64,000 bases of DNA from Kudoa neothunni. Its lineage: Eukaryota; Animalia; Cnidaria. This document shows positions 4,501 through 14,636 of this stretch, one piece after another (positions within the stretch are counted from its first letter, which is position 1; each line of letters begins with the position of its first letter). The notes under the pieces were generated by a model, which did no database searches, was not told the DNA's origin, and worked only from the letters and a program-made list of their open reading frames with translations. Position numbers and translations under genes: made by a program. The DNA is taken from positions 7,196,234 through 7,260,233 of the forward strand of contig OZ199839.1 of assembly GCA_964304625.1 (NCBI GenBank), read 5' to 3'.

Positions 4501-7500
4501 TGAATCAAACAGGAAGTTGACGGTGAAATTGGTTAACGAGGAACCATCGGAATTATGCACATTCGAATGGATCGATGCAACACCATTATCAGAAAATACC
4601 TTTTATTCTACCGAGTGCAAAAATAATAGAAACTGCTTATACAGCTTATGTAGTAGTATTACTTTTGATAGTATTCCAGAAAATGTGAAGGCAGTAAAAA
4701 TTCGCGTCCTTAAATTAGGAATGGTACCGTTATATAGTTATGATAACAACATTCACTTTTGTAATTTTAAATTTGGTATAAAATTGAATTAACTTATTTT
4801 AGTAAAACACCTAAATGATATTCCTCCTACAATATCCGGTTCTAATATCAAAATTAATATCACGAAGGCTAAGTTGGATGAGGATGGTAAACCATTTGCA
4901 ATTCTTGTTGATAATCTTTGTACCTTAAATTATTGGAATGTTTATGCTCCGTTGAATTATGAATGGGATAAAAAAAGAATCGATAATGTGACTTGTAGGG
5001 TAGGTGAAATGGAAATATCGCTAGGCACACGTCATTTACTTAATGAGGTTGCTGTGAATATCGAAACGATTCCCAATCATGAAGTAATGAAATACTTTTA
5101 TTATAGAAAAAGTAATCCTTTATAGTAAAACATTTTTATAATTCTTTAAGAATCGTCGAACAGTCTTTCAACCACCGCCGTTAGTACTACTTCCACCACT
5201 GACGGATTTAATCTCACCCCAGTTCCACAGCCCCGACAAGCAAATGCACAATTTACTTGAAACAAACAGATTCAAATCTTGGATACATTCCGGCAGTTTG
5301 TAGAGGAAATAAACCATGTGTCAATAACTGCGATACACAATTTAATATTATTGGATTAAATTCGGGTGCCAACTATGATATAAAAAGTAGTGCCTACAGG
5401 AGATTACGCGGAACAAATATTTAAAAACCAAAAAACAGGTAATATTTTTATTCAAATTTTCGAAAATATTCTTTAGCTGGAGAGCCAATAACTTTTAAAG
5501 TTTCCAATGAATCAACAAGGAAAACACTTAAAATAATTCCTGACAAAAATTTTGAAAACATTAATGAAACTGATTGTTATTATCAGCTATGTAAATATGA
5601 AATGGATGAAAGTAAATAATTAAGAATTTTCTAAAATAAAATAACTTAGATTCATCAACGGATCTGTCAAAACCATGTACAGGACACACAACTGAATTCT
5701 TGGTCTCAAAATGCAATCAAATTAATCTACATAATGGCTTATATAGCAGTGAAAACAATTACAGGGTAATCGTGTACGCAAGCGGAAAATCAGCGCCATA
5801 TGAGCTTTTTGTGCCAGGTGAAAATTATAACGTATATTAGAATAATATCAGTTTAGCATTTTTCCGATCTGGTAAACTAAAGCAGAAGTTCATACCTTCA
5901 AACGAAGACGAACCCGGAATTGGAAAATTTTCGATTTCTCTGTCAGAATTTCCAAAGAGTAATAAATGCGCAATAAAATTTCTAGCTTTGAAATAACCCC
6001 GGCTTACAAAAAACCAACTTGTTCTTCAAACATGAATGGAAATTTTTGTGTTGTGAATTGTGATGTAACAGATTTTGAAATTGGTTATGTAAATTCAAAA
6101 GTGGATCGATACATAGCAGTTTTTTACGGTGATAATGACGATAATGCCAAGAACTCTATTAGGGTTCGGTTTTTCCAATAATAATGGGTAAATAAAATAA
6201 CTTATGATGCTTATCTATATAATTAACAAAAACAGTTGGTTCAGCCAAAACATATTCATTCTTCTCATATATAAAAACACTCATTAAATATATGTTATTT
6301 ATTATAGATAACCTACATGAAAACACGTACAAGTTGGAACATGTTGGCGACAAAATTAGTTTTTTCCTACAAATCAACATCCAAAACCGACTTTAGAATT
6401 ATTGCTGATAAATCAAAGGTGATAAATAGTGATAATAATGGTTTATCTGTATTTGACTATTCTGATACACCTGAAAATAAATCAGTCACTCTCCCAATTA
6501 ACGAGATCAAAAATAATTATAGGATTGATTCAACCATTATGTGGCCTCAGTTGCTTTATTTCAAAGATAATACTTTTGTGAATGATACAATTCCTTTAAA
6601 AACGAATATTATTTTCTCCATTTCTGAAGTTAATGATAACAACAGGAAGTTAAAAATCAATTTCTCTCCTGGTCCATATAATGATGAAATGTGTCACGTT
6701 AAGGTCTTTAAAGTGGATGAAATGGGTGCAGATCAAGAAAATAAGGTTTTGAATACCTGTGATAATATAACAGATGGGTGTTATCAGTTATGCCAAGACG
6801 GTATAATAAATTTAAATGAAGATTACGATAAAGTTGGAGTCACTGTGAAACGAAGATATGATCTAAAGAAACACAAACAATATTTTAAAAGTAAATTTAA
6901 TTTTTTCCCCCACTAATTATTGCTTTTAGAGGGTGACAATGGATTCACTTTGTCGGAATTAACCAAAACCGGGGTTACTTTGACTGGACTAAATACTTAT
7001 CAGAATATAAACAAAGATGGCGAAACCCCATCATGTAACATTAGAATCTCAAAAGCACACTCCTCTTCTATTGAATCAACGGCTCAGTGTGGTTCTAACG
7101 AATGCACCACTACCTGTGATAACTCATATTCGATCACTGGTTTGTCTCCTGGTACTAATTATGTGGTATCAACTCAAGTTTCAAACCTCGGATTTAAGGA
7201 AAATTACACCAAGAAAATCACCTTCAGAACCCGTATATTCTATTTTAGATTTTTTGGTTAAAATTAACTAGTTGGTGATGCTGCATTGAGTGAATCAAGC
7301 AAAGGTCCAATCCTAGATAAAGAGGGCGTTAAAATCACCCCACTTCAATCTAATAATGAGGAACTTATGTGCCAATTGTATGTTAAAAAGAAAGGCGGAT
7401 CCAACTCAAAATATATGGCTGTTTGTCATGGAATGGGAATTTGTGAAAACAAATGTGATAGTGAATTTAACATAGCTAATCTCGAGTTAGGAGAAACGTA

Positions 7501-8490
7501 CGAAATAATTGTTGAACCATCTGATGACAAACAAGATAAAACCTATGAAATAGAAATAAGTAATGAATAATATTTAGTCTACTTATAGAATAATTTTTAA
7601 GAAAATGGTGAGATTGATATCAAATGTACATATTATGGAGAGAGTGATTTGAAAATCGATGTGAATTTTGATCAAAAAAATGAAAATTCGATTTGTCCTT
7701 TTATGTTTTACGAGAATACAGAATATAAAGAAAAACGTCCATTGATTGCTTGGTGTCATGATAATGATCGGGAGTGTTCAGCAAATAAATGCGTTATTCA
7801 GATAAATGGATTGTCTAAAGACAAAGATTACATTTTGGAAGTGAAAGCGAAGGGCTACTCAAAATACAAAATAGAAGATGTTCCATGTAAATAAGTTGAT
7901 TACATTATTTTCAATATTTTTAAACTAATTATCTGTTTATATACATATGAAGACAAAAAAGTGTCACGATTAATAGGGTAAAACCAAAATATCCTTTATG
8001 TTTTATAATATTCTTTTTAGTAAATGTATTATTGAGAGGAACTATATTAACGTAAATATATCTACAAGAGCAACACATAAAGAGCGAATATGATGATGTT
8101 GATTTTGAGGATATCACCGAAGATGTGATTACAAGAGTTCAAGGAGGGTATATATTTATTTAATGATACGCAGAGTAGTATATATTTATTTAGTTATTCA
8201 ATTAATATATAAATATTTATTATTTAATATGAGTAGAAGCTAAAGGAACCTTAGACTATGAGACGGCGACAAATAATTATGCGTATTTTATGCTATCATT
8301 CTAATGTTTTACCCTTTAATAGGTCTTATGAATTTTACATGTAAATTTATAATCACATCATTCTGTTTAAATAATGGTTTTTAGTCTTTATGCCTTGATA
8401 CCACTTGTGGAATCAATATTATTGATCACGGGTATATTTATTTTTAGAAGGTGGAAAAGAAGAGTAAGAAATAAAGGGAGCCATCCTTAA
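1523..8490 (+). CDS. Large multi-exon type I membrane protein (roughly 2000 aa) with about 12 Cys-containing FN3-like repeats
   Basis: ATG 1523 plus intron 1569-1608 gives a signal-peptide-like N-terminus (MLCNRFTSINICCFIWFVLNNAAS). A chain of same-strand ORFs is joined by short GT-AG introns (e.g. 4155-4193, 4776-4802, 6891-6929). FN3 tyrosine-corner motifs recur: ITLTSLLPSTEYILRI, IINLDPKTRYKITV, ITGLSPGTNYVVS, IANLELGETYEIIV, INGLSKDKDYILEV. The last exon (8385-8490) encodes LYALIPLVESILLITGIFIF-RRWKRRVRNKGSHP*. Several homopolymer frameshifts are present. Confidence 0.85.
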
Positions 8491-8532
8491 GGACACACCT
8501 ATGATCATAATTTACATATAGTAGTTTTTAGT

Positions 8533-8560
8533 TAATTCGCTAATTCGCTAATTCGCTAAT
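8533..8560. repeat. (TAATTCGC)x3 short tandem repeat just downstream of the stop codon
   Basis: taattcgc taattcgc taattcgc taat read directly. Confidence 0.8.
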
Positions 8561-8759
8561 TAATTAATTATTTTTTGTTTTTCCTCAGTTGCGCAATTTG
8601 TTTAAATCATAGCTACTACCTTCTGTCTATATAAAGTAATACAATAGAGCCTCTACAGCCTAATTTGTACTTTTATAAAAGTTTGGATTCAGTTCGAAAA
8701 TTTTTCGATTGATATGGTTTTAATATCTTAAACATTAATATAAAGAACGAAATAATAAT

Positions 8760-9470
8760 AATAAAAATATAATATGGGAAGATTTTAATGATTTGCTATA
8801 GCGAAGTAAAAATGTCTATTTTTAATCCTATTAATCCCATAAATTACACATCTAAAGATCCAATATGGTGACATTTTAGAGAAGCTTAGTGTAAAAAATA
8901 AAAATATTAAAGTATTTTATTAGGCTGAAATTACTTCCTGGTGCAATGGCAGTGTCTTTAAATTATATTAAAAAAGAAGCCGTTTTGTTAATATTAGCTC
9001 AACTTAGATTAGTAAAAGATTATCAACCTTCGATACTATTCTTATTGAACAAGCGCAAATAATAGGTTCAAATTTTTTCGAATCCAATAATTATTCAAAG
9101 ATGATAATATATTTAAGCTGAAGAAATCAATAATCTGGAGATCCTTAAGAGAAAAAAGATTATGCGTGAATTCTTGAGTCTCAAAAAATAATGGTTGATA
9201 TTGATCTTGTTATAAATGATTTTAAGACACTGTGAAGTGTTTATTTATTTTTTTATTTTGTTACCGAAAAAATATAACTACATCCTACTCTAACAAAAGG
9301 ACCATTGATATGATATAAAGTTTGAAAACCAGTTGCAAACAAATATTTTAGTACGCAGCTTCTTTTTGATAACAAAATTAGTGTATGCGGTTAAGTCTAA
9401 AATTTAAAATTATTTAAATGTATTGACAACGATATTGGGGGCCGGTAGAGGAGCGTCGTCAACCATTAAT
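8760..9470 (+). mobile_element. Possible heavily decayed hAT transposase relic
   Basis: Fragmentary SKDPIW (~8851) and VDIDLVINDFK (~9195) resemble the N-terminal and C-terminal motifs of hAT transposases. No clear TIRs. Confidence 0.3.
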
Positions 9471-9707
9471 GAAGAGATCGGAAGATGAGGTTCTATATTA
9501 TTTCATCGTTAAAATTCAAAAATTAAAATATAATTAAGCGCCAAAGACAAAAACTAATTCAATGCAATCAAATATTCAAAAAATAAGCTGGCTTAAATAA
9601 TAGTGGGGAATAGTTCGATGTAAGAAACTTTCAAAGATACAGAAAGGACATTAGTATATGAGTGGTTTTCAGTAGGAGGGTCAGATAAGATCTGTAATTT
9701 TAAGGGT

Positions 9708-12228
9708 TTATTTTCTGGAAGAATCCTTTACTGAGGGATTTCTCTCGATATTTTTACTACTTACTTCAGCAACTGTGTTTTGGTCTGGTTTGCTATCAGT
9801 TGTATTAGTTGAGTTGAAATTTTTCTTCGATTTGGATTTTCCCCTTTCCTTAGATGGAGGAGTAGAATTTTCATCTTCGGCAAGATCGTTTACCGCAGCT
9901 GGATGAACCCCTGTTGTCAATGCTGTTGTCGCTGCTGCAGTAAACATAATGCTCATCGTTGGTTAGATCAGACACTGGGGTTTTGGTCGCATTCACATTT
10001 TTATTTTTCACATTACCATTATTAGAACTATCTTCAAAGTTTGAAGTTGGAGAAAGTAGTTGATGGTGTAAAAGCGAATTGTGAGATCTCACCTCAACCG
10101 GTAACGAATGTTCACCTCCTCTTTCTTTCCATTCCCTTTGCATGCACACTTCACATGATTGAATAAATTTTGTCACTCCTTGAGCAATGTCGTTTGAGTA
10201 GCAGTAGCGCAACATTCTCGAGATTGTCTCATTGCGAGTGAAATGTTCGCCATTTTCTTCTGAAATTTTCAATATATTAAAAAAATATACAGTAACAGTT
10301 GCAAAAAAGTACTAATATGAAACCGAGGAGCATGTTCGATCACAGCATCGACATCTCTCAACCAAAGACGCAATCTCTCGCTGAAAGACGACACACTGTA
10401 TATGTAGTTGTCAATGATTTTAAATTTTTTGGATTTCCGCCGTAAATAAGCTTTTCTTGAAGGGTCAGCGTTTGGGGGCCATTTTCGATGCAATTTGTAG
10501 TAGTAGATAGTGTCATAATCATCATAGCAATATTTCGCCATGAGGTTTCTTGACTGAACCGAACTCGGTTCGTCTTGGATGAAAAATGGGTCGGTTTCAT
10601 TGCGTTTGTTGGAGGGGACTATAGGAGCATCTCTCACTTCGCTTATGGTTTTGACCTCGTTGGAAATGGTTAAATTTTGTATCGAATTTGTGACCGCTCT
10701 ATTGGGATAGTTTGGAGTAGTTGCCAAATTGGTATCAGTTCCGGCTGAAGGTTGGTTTGTGTCAGCGGAAGAGCCATCATTCGTATGCTGTACATCAAAT
10801 TTGTTTGTGGATTCTTCGAACGGTGTGATATTTACGTCATCTTGAATACGATGCCCACTTTCACGAATAATTTCCCTCGATTCCATTATCAGTTTTTGGC
10901 GAGATATCAAGTAGAGGGGATCCCTTAAACACAATTGGAAGGCAACTTCATTCATTAACATCTCATTGAGATTTAGCGACGATGATTTTCTTCGATTGTC
11001 ACTTCTTCCAAATATTACAGATGAATTTTTGATCATGTTGACGCGATCTTCATCCAACGAATCCAAACGTATTAAAAAAGGGATCCTGGTTGGTATTCGT
11101 ATCGAGTGATACTTGAATATCGGTGGATCTAACAGATTATATTTGTGAAGAGGTGAGTTTTCCATAGCTTTTGAGCCTTCAAAGATTGGACAATAGCTTG
11201 GAAACGGTTTACCTTTGGCTGGCGGATACATTCTAATGTTGTTTGGATGAATGTCATTGGGGTGGTTATAATCAGGTTGGCTGGACGAGGGTTGATTCAA
11301 AGCAATAGTTGAGTTTGGTGATATTGTTGTCGGGTTGAGTTTATACATCATTGGGGGTTTGTTATGATTTTGAGATGGTGGCAATACATTAGTGGTTGGA
11401 CAGAATCCATGGAAATAATGTCTAGCTGGTTCCGAGTTCATTCTATTATGCGAATAATAACGCAGTGGGAGACTGTGATATGGATGATAGTAGCTTCTAT
11501 TGTACGCTGGTTGGGTGATGTTAGTTCCAGAGTTGTGCTCATGGTTGTATGGATGTACAGGCGAGATTTTACCTATACTTGCTGGGCCGCTTGAGTTGGT
11601 GAGATTTTCCTCTGGCGTTGTATTGTAAACCTCTTCACCGGTCGATTCGATGTAGTAACGTTTGGTATAGCTGGGCACAAAATTATTTGGGCCAACAACC
11701 TTGTAGGAAATATGATGAACGCATGTGATGTCCTCGGTCTTGGGCTTTTTGGTGGGGCTATCAAGTGTGGAAGTGTTATGTTCGATAGTTCGTTGGTTTG
11801 CAGGTGAGAGCTCAACCCATTTTTCGGTAGGACTGTGAGAAGTATTTTTAGCAGCTCCATTGAAGTTAATTCCTACAAAAGTGCCAATACAAAATTTTCT
11901 ACCGCATAAACCACCCACCTTCTGTCGAGATTGGTGTGGGTTTTCTATCCGAATCGGATTCCATTTCAACTTGATTATCTAAATCTATTAACATCAACTA
12001 TTTCCAAACAGCTTTCAACCTACTATAATTGTTATCTAGAGCTTGCTTTATTCGGGCCTTGTCCTGCTGTTTCAGAGACGCGAATATATGATCGAATTTT
12101 TCCTCATCGACAGTATTTTTATGCACATCAATAATATCATCCAAATGATGTGTGGAGAGCTCATCCCAATACTCGAGTAGGTCCAGCTCTTTCAAAATAT
12201 CGTATATAATTTGGCTAGTGTCGCTCAT
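9708..12228 (-). CDS. NAB: NGFI-A/EGR-binding corepressor (NAB) homologue with a C-terminal integrase-type HHCC zinc-binding domain
   Basis: NCD1-like IYDILKELDLLEYWDELSTHHLDD...ARIKQAL (12020-12228). NCD2-like MIKNSSVIFGRSDNRRKSSSLNLNEMLMNEVAFQLCLRDPLYLISRQKLIMESREIIRE (~10855-11055) matches NAB IRKYSAIYGRFDSKRK...LTLHELTVNEAAAQLC. Introns at ~11980-12022, ~11875-11919 and 10260-10312. The 3' end (9871 or 9708) and a possible extra 5' exon are uncertain. Confidence 0.85.
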
Positions 12229-14636
12229 CTAATAACAAAAATACAACCTCGCTACCAATTCAATAGTTGTGTATTAGTTCTTAGTATTCATCAAATGGTG
12301 ACAACTATATTATAAAGTGTAGGTGTTGTTGCTTATTAACCACCAATAGCTCCTATTAAGAGTGTTAAGTACTTGTTTTGAAATGATGTTGGATTAGATG
12401 GCTGATGGTTGACGACTAATTGATAATTGTTGCAAGCTATTCGTTTTTGTAATTATCCTCTGTGGGAATTTGACTTTGCAGATGTGAACACACTTGCTTT
12501 TAGATTAGCTGGAAATTGGTGTGGGGATTTTTCAACACCCACAGGATTGTGCAACTCCTCACCGACATCTGCAGGTAACTATTTGTTTACTATCTCTGTT
12601 ATGGTAACCAATTTTAGAATAATATTTTTTCGAATATCACACGTCTTTGACAGCCCCCTTGGCACATTGAAGAGGATCCCGCACCGGCAAGGGTCTAGTA
12701 GAGAAGAGGGGTGTGTGAAAGTTGTTGTTTTGATTAATCGAATCTTAGATTAGTCATGTAAAGCCATTGGATGCTATTGCTAAAAAAATTCTTTTAATTC
12801 ATGGATAATAAATAAAATATTTTTTTGAATATTATTAGAAATAAATTTAATTGGTTTTGTCAAAAATCTCGTAATTGGATTAAGCCGACCCTAAATTACT
12901 AGATTATATGGAGTGAGTTATCACTCCCTGTACTTGACAATTTTTGATGATAGACTTGGTATATTTTAGTAAAAATAAAAGACTTTTTAATTATTTATGA
13001 TGATATTGATGATTTAAAAGGGTCTTTTAGGTGGTTTTCTCCTCATGTTTTGTTAACTCCTGGTAGAATTAAGTGATAATTCCCATTTGCTTATCATCTG
13101 GAGAAATTAATTGAAAAGAATTGGTGTCATAATTTTGTAATTTCTAAAAGTTGCCTTTATATCGCGTAATGTACCACTAATTGAACATGTTCTTCTAAGC
13201 ATATACATTCTTAAGTTTCCTTTGTAAACATTTGGGGATAATTGGAACAGATGGCGCCAAAAAATCTTCCATCTATTACCAAAGACCACATTGTATAAAT
13301 ATGACGTTATAATAAACGTAAAATAATTTAAAAATTTATTTTTCTCCTTTTTTTACTCAACAACAATAAACTTTTTATCGATTATTAATCACATTAGTGA
13401 GGATTAATATTCTGATTATATTGTTGATGTAAAGTGTGTTAATTTTGTCATATTAATGACATCAATAACCCCCGTCTATTTCACAAAAATTATTATATAA
13501 CCGTTTTTAACGTTATAACCGATTTTTGCTAAAATGAATGAATTGTGCCAATACTTTTGTGCTGATTATTGCAGATAGGATGACCTAAAATGGCCTTCTA
13601 TTGAACAGAATCTAATATAACTACCAAAAGGTAGATATGTGATTTATTACGATTTTGTTGTTCAATAAATATAAGCCGCGGTATATTTATTTACCTATAT
13701 CTTACGTAAAGAGATTATGGATAGCAAATGAATATATTTAATGGAAAACAATTTATAACCTAATCAACTTATTCTCACAAAAAAATAAAATTCTAATAAA
13801 CATTCAACGTTAACATATTTTCGTCACAACATAATCTCTCCATAGACTCGCCAATATACTTTGCCACAATTGTGATGTGATCCGACAATTCGCTAGGGAT
13901 ACACCAGCCAACCAATCCAACAGGGAATATCGGCCTATTCTCTAGAGATGCTAGTAACCCAACCTTTTTCAGGCCCCAATCTCAAATAAATGTTTGTTGT
14001 GACCCGAAATCGTCATGTGTCTTCTATGTTCTATAATGGTGGTAGATTTTTTCCGACTGCAATAGATTGTGCCTCTTGCTGCCATGACTCATTGTTTGAC
14101 GAGAAGGTGACCGCTGGTCCACCATAGGACTCATGTGTGAAAAATCTGATCAAAATCTATAGAAAGTATTGCCAAGGTATCTATCATAAGGGAGCAGATT
14201 TTTTCGTTACTGATCGTAGAATTAAAGTTAAAAATTCTTCATTAAATCACTAAATCAGTGCTTCCCAAATCATAATTAGATTAGTGCCTCTTATATATAA
14301 AAAGTGAACTTCATTTATAATATTTAGAGTCAAATTACTATGAAGAAGGAAAAACTTAAAAATTATTCCAAGCTGATTCAATTGTAGCATATTGTTTTGT
14401 TATAAATTATTTTCCATCAATTTGTTTTGAACAAGTACTTAATTGGATTTAAATTTTAGCGTAAATTATCTATAGAATTGTTTCAGAGGACCTATTATTT
14501 TACAATCTATTCATATTTTAGCTATATGACGCTGTGGTGCGTATTCCGTTGTATATCTATTTGAATATAAAAAACGAAGAATATTTACAAATAGAATTCA
14601 TGACTATTTTGTTTGAATGATAATTATTCTCTAATA

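Follow-up and report, generated by a model that had tools for sequence, protein, structure and literature searches.

The NAB gene and its parts

The gene described here lies in a stretch of 64,000 nucleotides from the myxozoan Kudoa neothunni (Cnidaria; GenBank assembly GCA_964304625.1, contig OZ199839.1, positions 7,196,234 to 7,260,233 of the forward strand), which we call the window and whose first letter is position 1. Its minus strand carries a gene of the NAB family of corepressors, the C-terminal half of which very probably holds an exapted fragment of a Ty3/gypsy-type (GIN1-like) integrase. This fragment, about 115 residues long, would comprise the integrase N-terminal extension domain (NED) and the zinc-binding N-terminal domain (NTD) with its two histidine and two cysteine ligands (HHCC), and it lacks the catalytic DDE core. 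The parts of the gene are as follows.

11998..12228, minus strand: first coding exon, NCD1-like, given as the limits of its open reading frame (ORF); a degenerate NCD1/SAM-like domain
10313-11969, minus strand: ORF of the large exon, carrying NCD2, the linker and the integrase-like block
10836..11162, minus strand: NCD2 block (PF04905, residues 294-375 of the large exon), sharing 92% of its residues with the sister species over 109 codons
10569..10835, minus strand: variable linker from NCD2 to the putatively integrase-derived module, with low identity and several indels relative to the sister species
10313..10568, minus strand: block resembling the N-terminal extension, plus the first HHCC helix; two helices and a three-stranded sheet, ending with the first histidine (..RFHI) and one base of the junction codon
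10260..10312, minus strand: GT-AG intron of 53 nucleotides, phase 1, read from the sequence, splitting the HHCC domain between its two histidine ligands
10137..10259, minus strand: second part of the HHCC domain (second histidine, then C-x2-C), PF17921 at 27.6 bits
9871..10136, minus strand: fast-evolving C-terminal tail to the stop codon, without a Pfam family

The original prediction, made from the sequence alone, had placed an integrase-type zinc finger downstream of NCD2 in one long ORF, and the peptides it quoted are indeed encoded there on the minus strand. This ORF, 10269..11969(-), carries NCD2 and has the C-terminal end ...AVIEHAPRFHI, while the exon from 10259 downwards encodes ENGEHFTRNETISRMLRYCYSNDIAQGVTKFIQSCEVC. 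The proposed intron has GT-AG borders and lies in phase 1. Its junction codon, A + AA, gives lysine, and reading directly across the junction yields the predicted ligand spacing of H-x6-H-x29-C-x2-C, which falls within the pattern H-x3-7-H-x23-32-C-x2-C of integrase HHCC domains. If the reading frame is continued into the intron it meets a stop after 14 codons, and the unspliced product lacks the second histidine and the CxxC. The obvious GT/AG pair for joining the NCD1-like exon to the large one breaks the frame; the limits given for the NCD1-like exon are those of its ORF.

Domain assignments

The exons of the window were searched separately, and tests of the whole domain (fold and full profile) were run on orthologues that encode it unbroken. 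NCD2 in the large exon is recognised by Pfam with 49.3 bits against a gathering score of 25 (PF04905, E 6.2e-13), and the sole NCD2 match in the whole genome (40.26 Mb, four contigs) is the gene at this locus, with 52.4 bits. It is the single NAB-family corepressor gene of the genome. The HHCC exon part, only 40 residues long, scores 27.6 bits for Pfam Integrase_H2C2, whose gathering score is 25.5 (PF17921, E 3.2e-6); of the 59 profile positions, 18-54 are matched, and the remaining ones are encoded upstream of the intron.

The Pfam check that had been suggested for the spliced protein was done exon by exon and bore out NCD2 and Integrase_H2C2 but not NCD1, the domain by which NABs bind EGR and multimerise. 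For SAM_NCD1 the NCD1-like exon scores 14.5 bits against a cut-off of 24.3 (E 0.035), and a genome-wide scan gave no match. In all five myxozoan NABs this domain is too diverged for Pfam and was recovered by profile-profile comparison only. When the five N-termini were combined into a profile, hhalign aligned it to canonical NCD1 with a probability of 95.9% (E 6e-9), which suggests that the myxozoan NCD1 is homologous to the canonical one and strongly diverged.

Fold of the module

The original prediction had recognised in the HHCC motif, and in the helix-strand block preceding it, the N-terminal zinc-binding region of Ty3/gypsy integrases and GIN1-type proteins. Besides the Pfam match, the fold of an orthologue agrees with this. 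Residues 370-495 of the Henneguya salminicola protein, which contain the undivided module, were modelled with AlphaFold2 (alignment A5), giving a predicted local distance difference test (pLDDT) value of 88.5 and a predicted template modelling score (pTM) of 0.75. In the model, two helices lead into a sheet of three strands, which is followed by a helical bundle. When it was compared with the PDB by Foldseek, the top 11 matches were all integrase chains of Ty3 or prototype foamy virus (PFV), with probability 1.00 and E-values from 4e-3 to 3e-2. VIA-align superposed it on the Ty3 integrase with a Z-score of 9.8 over 114 residues (chain residues 24-146) and on most PFV integrase entries with 8.3-8.7 (residues 9-110, i.e. 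NED and NTD), followed by the NTD of murine leukaemia virus (MLV) with 5.5, the next, unrelated chain having 2.6. In the ESM Atlas, clusters of GIN1, ZBTB11 and Gag-Pol proteins match with template modelling (TM) scores of 0.72-0.81 over 109-120 residues. By this model the helix-strand block in front of the intron corresponds to the integrase NED.

Conservation and selection

A sister species, represented by a contig from another sequencing run (Logan contig L011, protein P0001), has an orthologue in which an intron of 35 nucleotides stands at the identical codon position and in the same phase, and in which all four ligands are kept. The ratio of nonsynonymous to synonymous substitution rates (dN/dS), proposed as a check on the module, cannot be computed for this pair as synonymous sites are saturated; we therefore report the proportions of nonsynonymous and synonymous differences (pN and pS), and these do speak for constraint, with pN of 0.13-0.18 in the module at a pS of about 0.9.

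NCD2 block, 109 codons: 92% amino acid identity, pN 0.08, pS 0.91
Block before the intron, 85 codons: 78% amino acid identity, pN 0.13, pS 0.94
HHCC exon part, 40 codons: 78% amino acid identity, pN 0.18, pS 0.87
Next 40 codons of the tail: 7% amino acid identity, pN 0.72, pS 0.64

Similarity to the sister species collapses directly after the CxxC. Identity is thus high in both domains, the linker between them is rich in indels and the tail has collapsed, and selection therefore acts on exactly NCD2 and the module and stops after the CxxC. These substitution patterns point to purifying selection on the module.

The tail may extend further than the stop codon in the window. A contig from run X3 (depth about 6) has one base fewer at 9893, with which the tail frame runs into the ORF 9708..9956(-) and ends at 9708 instead of 9871. 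Two more single-nucleotide differences from the same run, at 9523 and 9578, are both non-coding; all three differences are either assembly indel errors or alleles.

Myxozoan orthologues and their distribution

An exhaustive profile search of 1.84 billion protein representatives returned 84 matches, 78 of which contain NCD2. Integrase_H2C2 is above its cut-off in two of these 78 (28.5 and 32.7 bits; P0002 and P0003), and both are of myxozoan type. The first is the Henneguya salminicola protein, deposited as a "hypothetical protein" (KAF0992971.1) and encoded by one uninterrupted genomic ORF of 1863 nucleotides (L017:4001-5863). The second comes from a third relative (Logan contig L016) and likewise holds NCD2 and H2C2 within one uninterrupted ORF. 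Since both encode the arrangement as a single ORF, the fusion does not depend on the splicing model for Kudoa neothunni. An alignment-based search added Myxobolus squamalis MXB_5598 (P0120), with both Pfam domains and a precomputed H2C2 match.

Aligned to these proteins, the two exon pieces of the window meet at the intron position with no problems of overlap or gap, and the block before the intron aligns to the corresponding block of Henneguya, Myxobolus and the third relative, as well as to two further exons (P0060 and P0077) discussed below. All four zinc ligands, reported as intact in the original prediction, are intact in five species. Spacing between the histidines differs slightly, being H-x7-H in Henneguya and the third relative and H-x8-H in Myxobolus (by pattern match), each followed by x29-C-x2-C. 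In a tree of NCD2 the five myxozoan sequences form one clade with 99% support, and a genome that is small, AT-rich and has short introns likewise fits a myxozoan. A nematode origin, considered for the 40-Mb, AT-rich genome with its three large contigs, was dropped, as no SL1 sequence occurs in it and its best relatives are myxozoan. NCD2 followed by a core-less integrase module is common to at least five myxozoan species.

The statement that known NABs do without such a domain also held. Besides the two cases among 78 representatives, an integrase domain is absent from all 120 relatives listed for a cnidarian NAB, and it is likewise missing from the NABs annotated in hexacorals, octocorals, a sponge, an arachnid and vertebrates. 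The domain-architecture search thus found NAB together with H2C2 in a few myxozoan proteins only, two of them GenBank "hypothetical proteins". A scan of JGI metagenomes for the NED block gave 170 pattern matches, of which none was confirmed. Our literature search found no link between NAB or NCD2 and an integrase domain, nor between Myxozoa and NGFI-A or a domesticated integrase. The architecture was already present, unremarked, in the two deposited myxozoan proteins, and core-less HHCC modules as such are already known from host regulators (ZBTB11 and genes of GIN1 type).

Near their C-termini, the tails of the three intronless orthologues (P0002 at 560-575, P0120 and P0003) have a common basic motif, ..KK/R-x-RKS-x-P-x-KL, possibly serving as a signal for nuclear localisation. 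The alternative-frame tail of the window also has a K/S-rich stretch, and its homology to this motif is uncertain.

Age of the fusion

Two small clusters of ORFs, P0060/P0085 and P0077/P0088, match the block before the intron only. In the ENA assembly ERZ25878582 the block exon (P0060/P0085) lies 4-6 kb downstream of an exon with canonical NCD1 and NCD2 (P0006/P0103), on the same strand and in two contigs; the nearest named relatives of this NCD1+NCD2 exon are hexacoral NABs, with 45-49% identity. In a second assembly (ERZ17091519, contig L018) the NCD2 exon ends with AAG followed by GT, in phase 1, and an acceptor 483 nucleotides downstream restores the frame into the block. There the block ends with CAT ATT G followed by GTAAG, a phase-1 donor immediately after the homologous His-Ile, where the window reads CAT ATT A followed by GTAC. 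Position and phase of the domain-splitting intron thus recur both in the sister species and in this distant relative. In a maximum-likelihood tree P0006 and L018 have long branches and no settled position.

We infer that the fusion arose no later than in the ancestor shared by these myxozoans. It is probably older, perhaps older than Myxozoa, since an NCD2 exon is linked to the block in two cnidarian-like genomes as well, in one of them with the intron at the same position.

A host gene in a genome rich in retroelements

The genome of 40.26 Mb contains at least 138 matches to Integrase_H2C2, scoring up to 75 bits, and the copy in NAB is among the weakest. Many of the resident matches lie within open frames of 700-1300 codons. 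Six copies share an identical score of 75 bits, in frames of 729-1302 codons (C1:4245473, C1:9803235, C1:16897188, C2:891241, C2:11416549 and C3:9436454); apparently they resemble young families of Ty3/gypsy type.

The module in NAB is distinct from these. A genome-wide search with the 85 residues before the intron returns its own locus only. With the HHCC exon it returns its own locus and one retroelement copy, at 31% identity over 36 residues (E 0.08); compared by phmmer with ten resident copies, the same exon gives one match (L015, 19 bits). There are no direct repeats resembling long terminal repeats (LTRs) in 7900-12600, and no reverse transcriptase (RT), integrase core (rve) or long ORFs are found close by. 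As had been predicted, the DDE core is absent: neither the tail in the window nor the tails of the three orthologues, 137-149 residues long, contain rve or any other Pfam family after the CxxC. A functional retroelement integrase or transposase would have a DDE core after the HHCC motif, and this protein has none. The module is present in a single copy, is orthologous in several species, is under purifying selection and has no hallmarks of a mobile element, which are the features by which a domesticated transposable element gene would be recognised. The description of it as an old domesticated module is therefore upheld, given the signs of purifying selection and the lack of similarity to resident elements.

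Elsewhere in the window, a run of short ORFs at 6920-7894 (+) contains Cys-containing repeats of about 90 residues.

Comparison with known systems

NAB1 and NAB2 of vertebrates, Nab of Drosophila, MAB-10 of C. elegans and the NABs of cnidarians and sponges likewise have an N-terminal SAM-like NCD1 followed by NCD2. Canonical NABs differ in having no integrase-type domain; in the gene described here, their coiled-coil/Nab1-type C-terminus is replaced by the putative integrase module and a variable tail.

In structure the module resembles the NED and NTD of the Ty3 and PFV integrases (7q5b, 3l2q), in which two helices are likewise followed by a sheet of three strands and an HHCC bundle; the Z-scores are 9.8 and 8.7 over 114 and 99 residues. 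It differs from them in having no catalytic core, C-terminal domain or chromodomain, shares only 11-16% identity with them, and is part of neither a polyprotein nor a mobile element. The domesticated Ty3/gypsy or Ginger integrases GIN1, NYNRIN and KRBA2 contain Integrase_H2C2 of the same fold (TM 0.76 for GIN1 clusters) and are kept under selection by their hosts. All three retain the integrase core. In the Atlas, rve is kept by over half of the proteins in the first GIN1 cluster and by fewer in the other GIN1 clusters, whereas the NAB module keeps the N-terminal 115 residues only.

A further likeness is to ZBTB11, a transcriptional repressor that also has a core-less NED and HHCC finger, with the identical spacing HX6HX29CX2C and a TM score of 0.81 over model residues 6-126 (PMC5384227). 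ZBTB11 is however a vertebrate protein with BTB and C2H2 domains in which the module is N-terminal, while that of the myxozoan NABs is C-terminal, and the two are presumably independent acquisitions. A fish protein from Engraulis encrasicolus (XP_063039816.1, P0050) consists of three repeats of THAP with a core-less NED and HHCC, fused to a D-Tyr-tRNA deacylase domain, and thus shows one more unusual use of this integrase module by a host.

Role and origin of the module

It is tempting to suppose that the zinc-stabilised helical bundle, extended by the beta-sheet, offers a surface for protein-protein contacts. Through this surface the corepressor could self-associate or be tethered to a DNA-bound factor, and NAB would gain a second route to its targets, alongside the degenerate NCD1 or replacing it, with NCD2 still supplying repression. 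We put forward this role, self-association or tethering to a DNA-bound partner in addition to or instead of NCD1, tentatively and with somewhat less than even confidence. It is favoured over others because NCD1 is degenerate in these myxozoans and because there are precedents both for the NED and for ZBTB11. The NED of Ty3 and of the Dictyostelium element DGLT-A binds Pol III factors of the host (Tfc1, Tfc4) and may also associate with itself (PMC6101501), and the HX6HX29CX2C finger of ZBTB11 is required for repression, every one of its ligands being essential (PMC5384227).

The fused module might instead contact mainly nucleic acid, DNA or chromatin, so that NAB would be in part a direct DNA-binding repressor. 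The NED and NTD that the module resembles belong to integrase chains solved in complexes of intasomes with DNA (7q5b, 3l2q), and in intasomes these parts touch the ends of the element's DNA. Both the block and its flanks are rich in lysine and arginine (RRKSKKFK stretch), but we know of no sequence-specific DNA binding by an isolated integrase NTD. The HHCC finger of ZBTB11 has been argued to be necessary for repression of targets even without the C2H2 fingers (PMC5384227); the NED, on the other hand, is documented as a platform for protein interactions (PMC6101501). A predominantly nucleic-acid role is the main alternative; on balance we consider it rather unlikely, though less so than the other readings below.

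A different question is the donor. Instead of being captured directly from a retroelement, the module could go back to a host gene of GIN1/ZBTB11 type that was core-less and domesticated beforehand, and could have reached NAB through gene fusion or exon shuffling. The spacing H-x6-H-x29-C-x2-C has been reported in just this form for GIN1, NYNRIN and ZBTB11 (PMC5384227). In the Atlas, matches to GIN1 and ZBTB11 clusters (TM 0.76-0.81) equal those to Gag-Pol clusters, there is an old intron inside the module, and the core-less NED and HHCC recurs in host proteins such as the fish THAP protein mentioned above. Nevertheless the best match among solved structures is the Ty3 integrase (Z 9.8), the intronless myxozoan copies have H-x7-H or H-x8-H and not H-x6-H, and no GIN1-like donor turned up in the genome, where none was searched for. 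A host-gene donor therefore seems improbable to us, and the class of donor is beyond resolution with only about 115 residues at 15-30% identity.

About as improbable, or slightly more so, is an extended version in which the fusion is much older than Myxozoa, being a form of cnidarian NAB missed by annotation, and in which NCD1 decayed in the myxozoans and left the module as the main device for targeting and oligomerisation of a NAB independent of EGR. The linked exons in the two cnidarian-like assemblies are the observations closest to it, together with the matching intron position where the sequence could be read.

Several points weigh against the integrase-fusion reading as a whole or lend it no support. 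Three RNA runs labelled as the same species yielded not a single read, so they provide no test of transcription, and the sole contig that spans the intron is unspliced and comes from a fourth run resembling low-coverage DNA; the uninterrupted genomic ORF of Henneguya does speak indirectly for inclusion of the module in the host mRNA. In both ERZ25878582 and L018, the sequence that could be read covers the NCD2 exon and the block only. Scores for H2C2 in the window and the orthologues are just over the Pfam cut-off (27.6-32.7 bits). For the upstream block, integrase origin is indicated by the predicted fold of the orthologue and by weak profile matches in the PDB, where the Ty3 and PFV integrases were best at non-significant E-values of 0.5-1.2; a PDB sequence search with the 40-residue HHCC exon gave no match, and in pairwise phmmer comparisons the block showed no similarity to the ten resident retroelement copies. 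The Pfam family of the EGR N-terminus had no match in the genome, but none in the controls either. Finally, a homodimer prediction with two copies of the Henneguya segment scored 0.00, which gives no verdict for or against binding.

In another reading the HHCC exon would stand outside the NAB mRNA in Kudoa neothunni, as a separate small gene, a rarely used alternative 3' exon or a decaying relic, for which the missing RNA reads and the stop met after 14 codons of reading through the intron can be cited. Yet removal of the GT-AG intron leaves the frame intact, its position and phase and all the ligands recur in the sister species with 78% identity on both sides and a collapse of similarity just after the CxxC, and in two relatives a single ORF holds the entire arrangement, which makes this explanation very improbable. 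Chance adjacency of a recent retrotransposon fragment beside or inside NAB, conceivable in a genome so rich in Ty3/gypsy-type copies, is effectively refuted by the low identity of the best resident copy and the absence of any match to the upstream block, by the lack of LTRs, RT and rve nearby, and by orthology of the arrangement in at least five species.

From all these results we consider that the C-terminal half of this NAB very probably derives from an integrase NED and NTD and has been kept as part of a host gene. NABs are regarded as adaptors wholly dependent on EGR-type factors for their targeting. The practical impact of the finding is modest, as it is a comparative one and the function is only proposed. 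A lineage that kept a putatively integrase-derived zinc module on NCD2 while NCD1 decayed would nevertheless amount to a natural experiment in the re-targeting of a corepressor. It would also be a second, independent case beside ZBTB11, strengthening the view that the NED with its HHCC finger is a reusable regulatory part and not a leftover, and the fusion may serve as a lineage marker that can be traced through the extremely reduced genomes of myxozoans.

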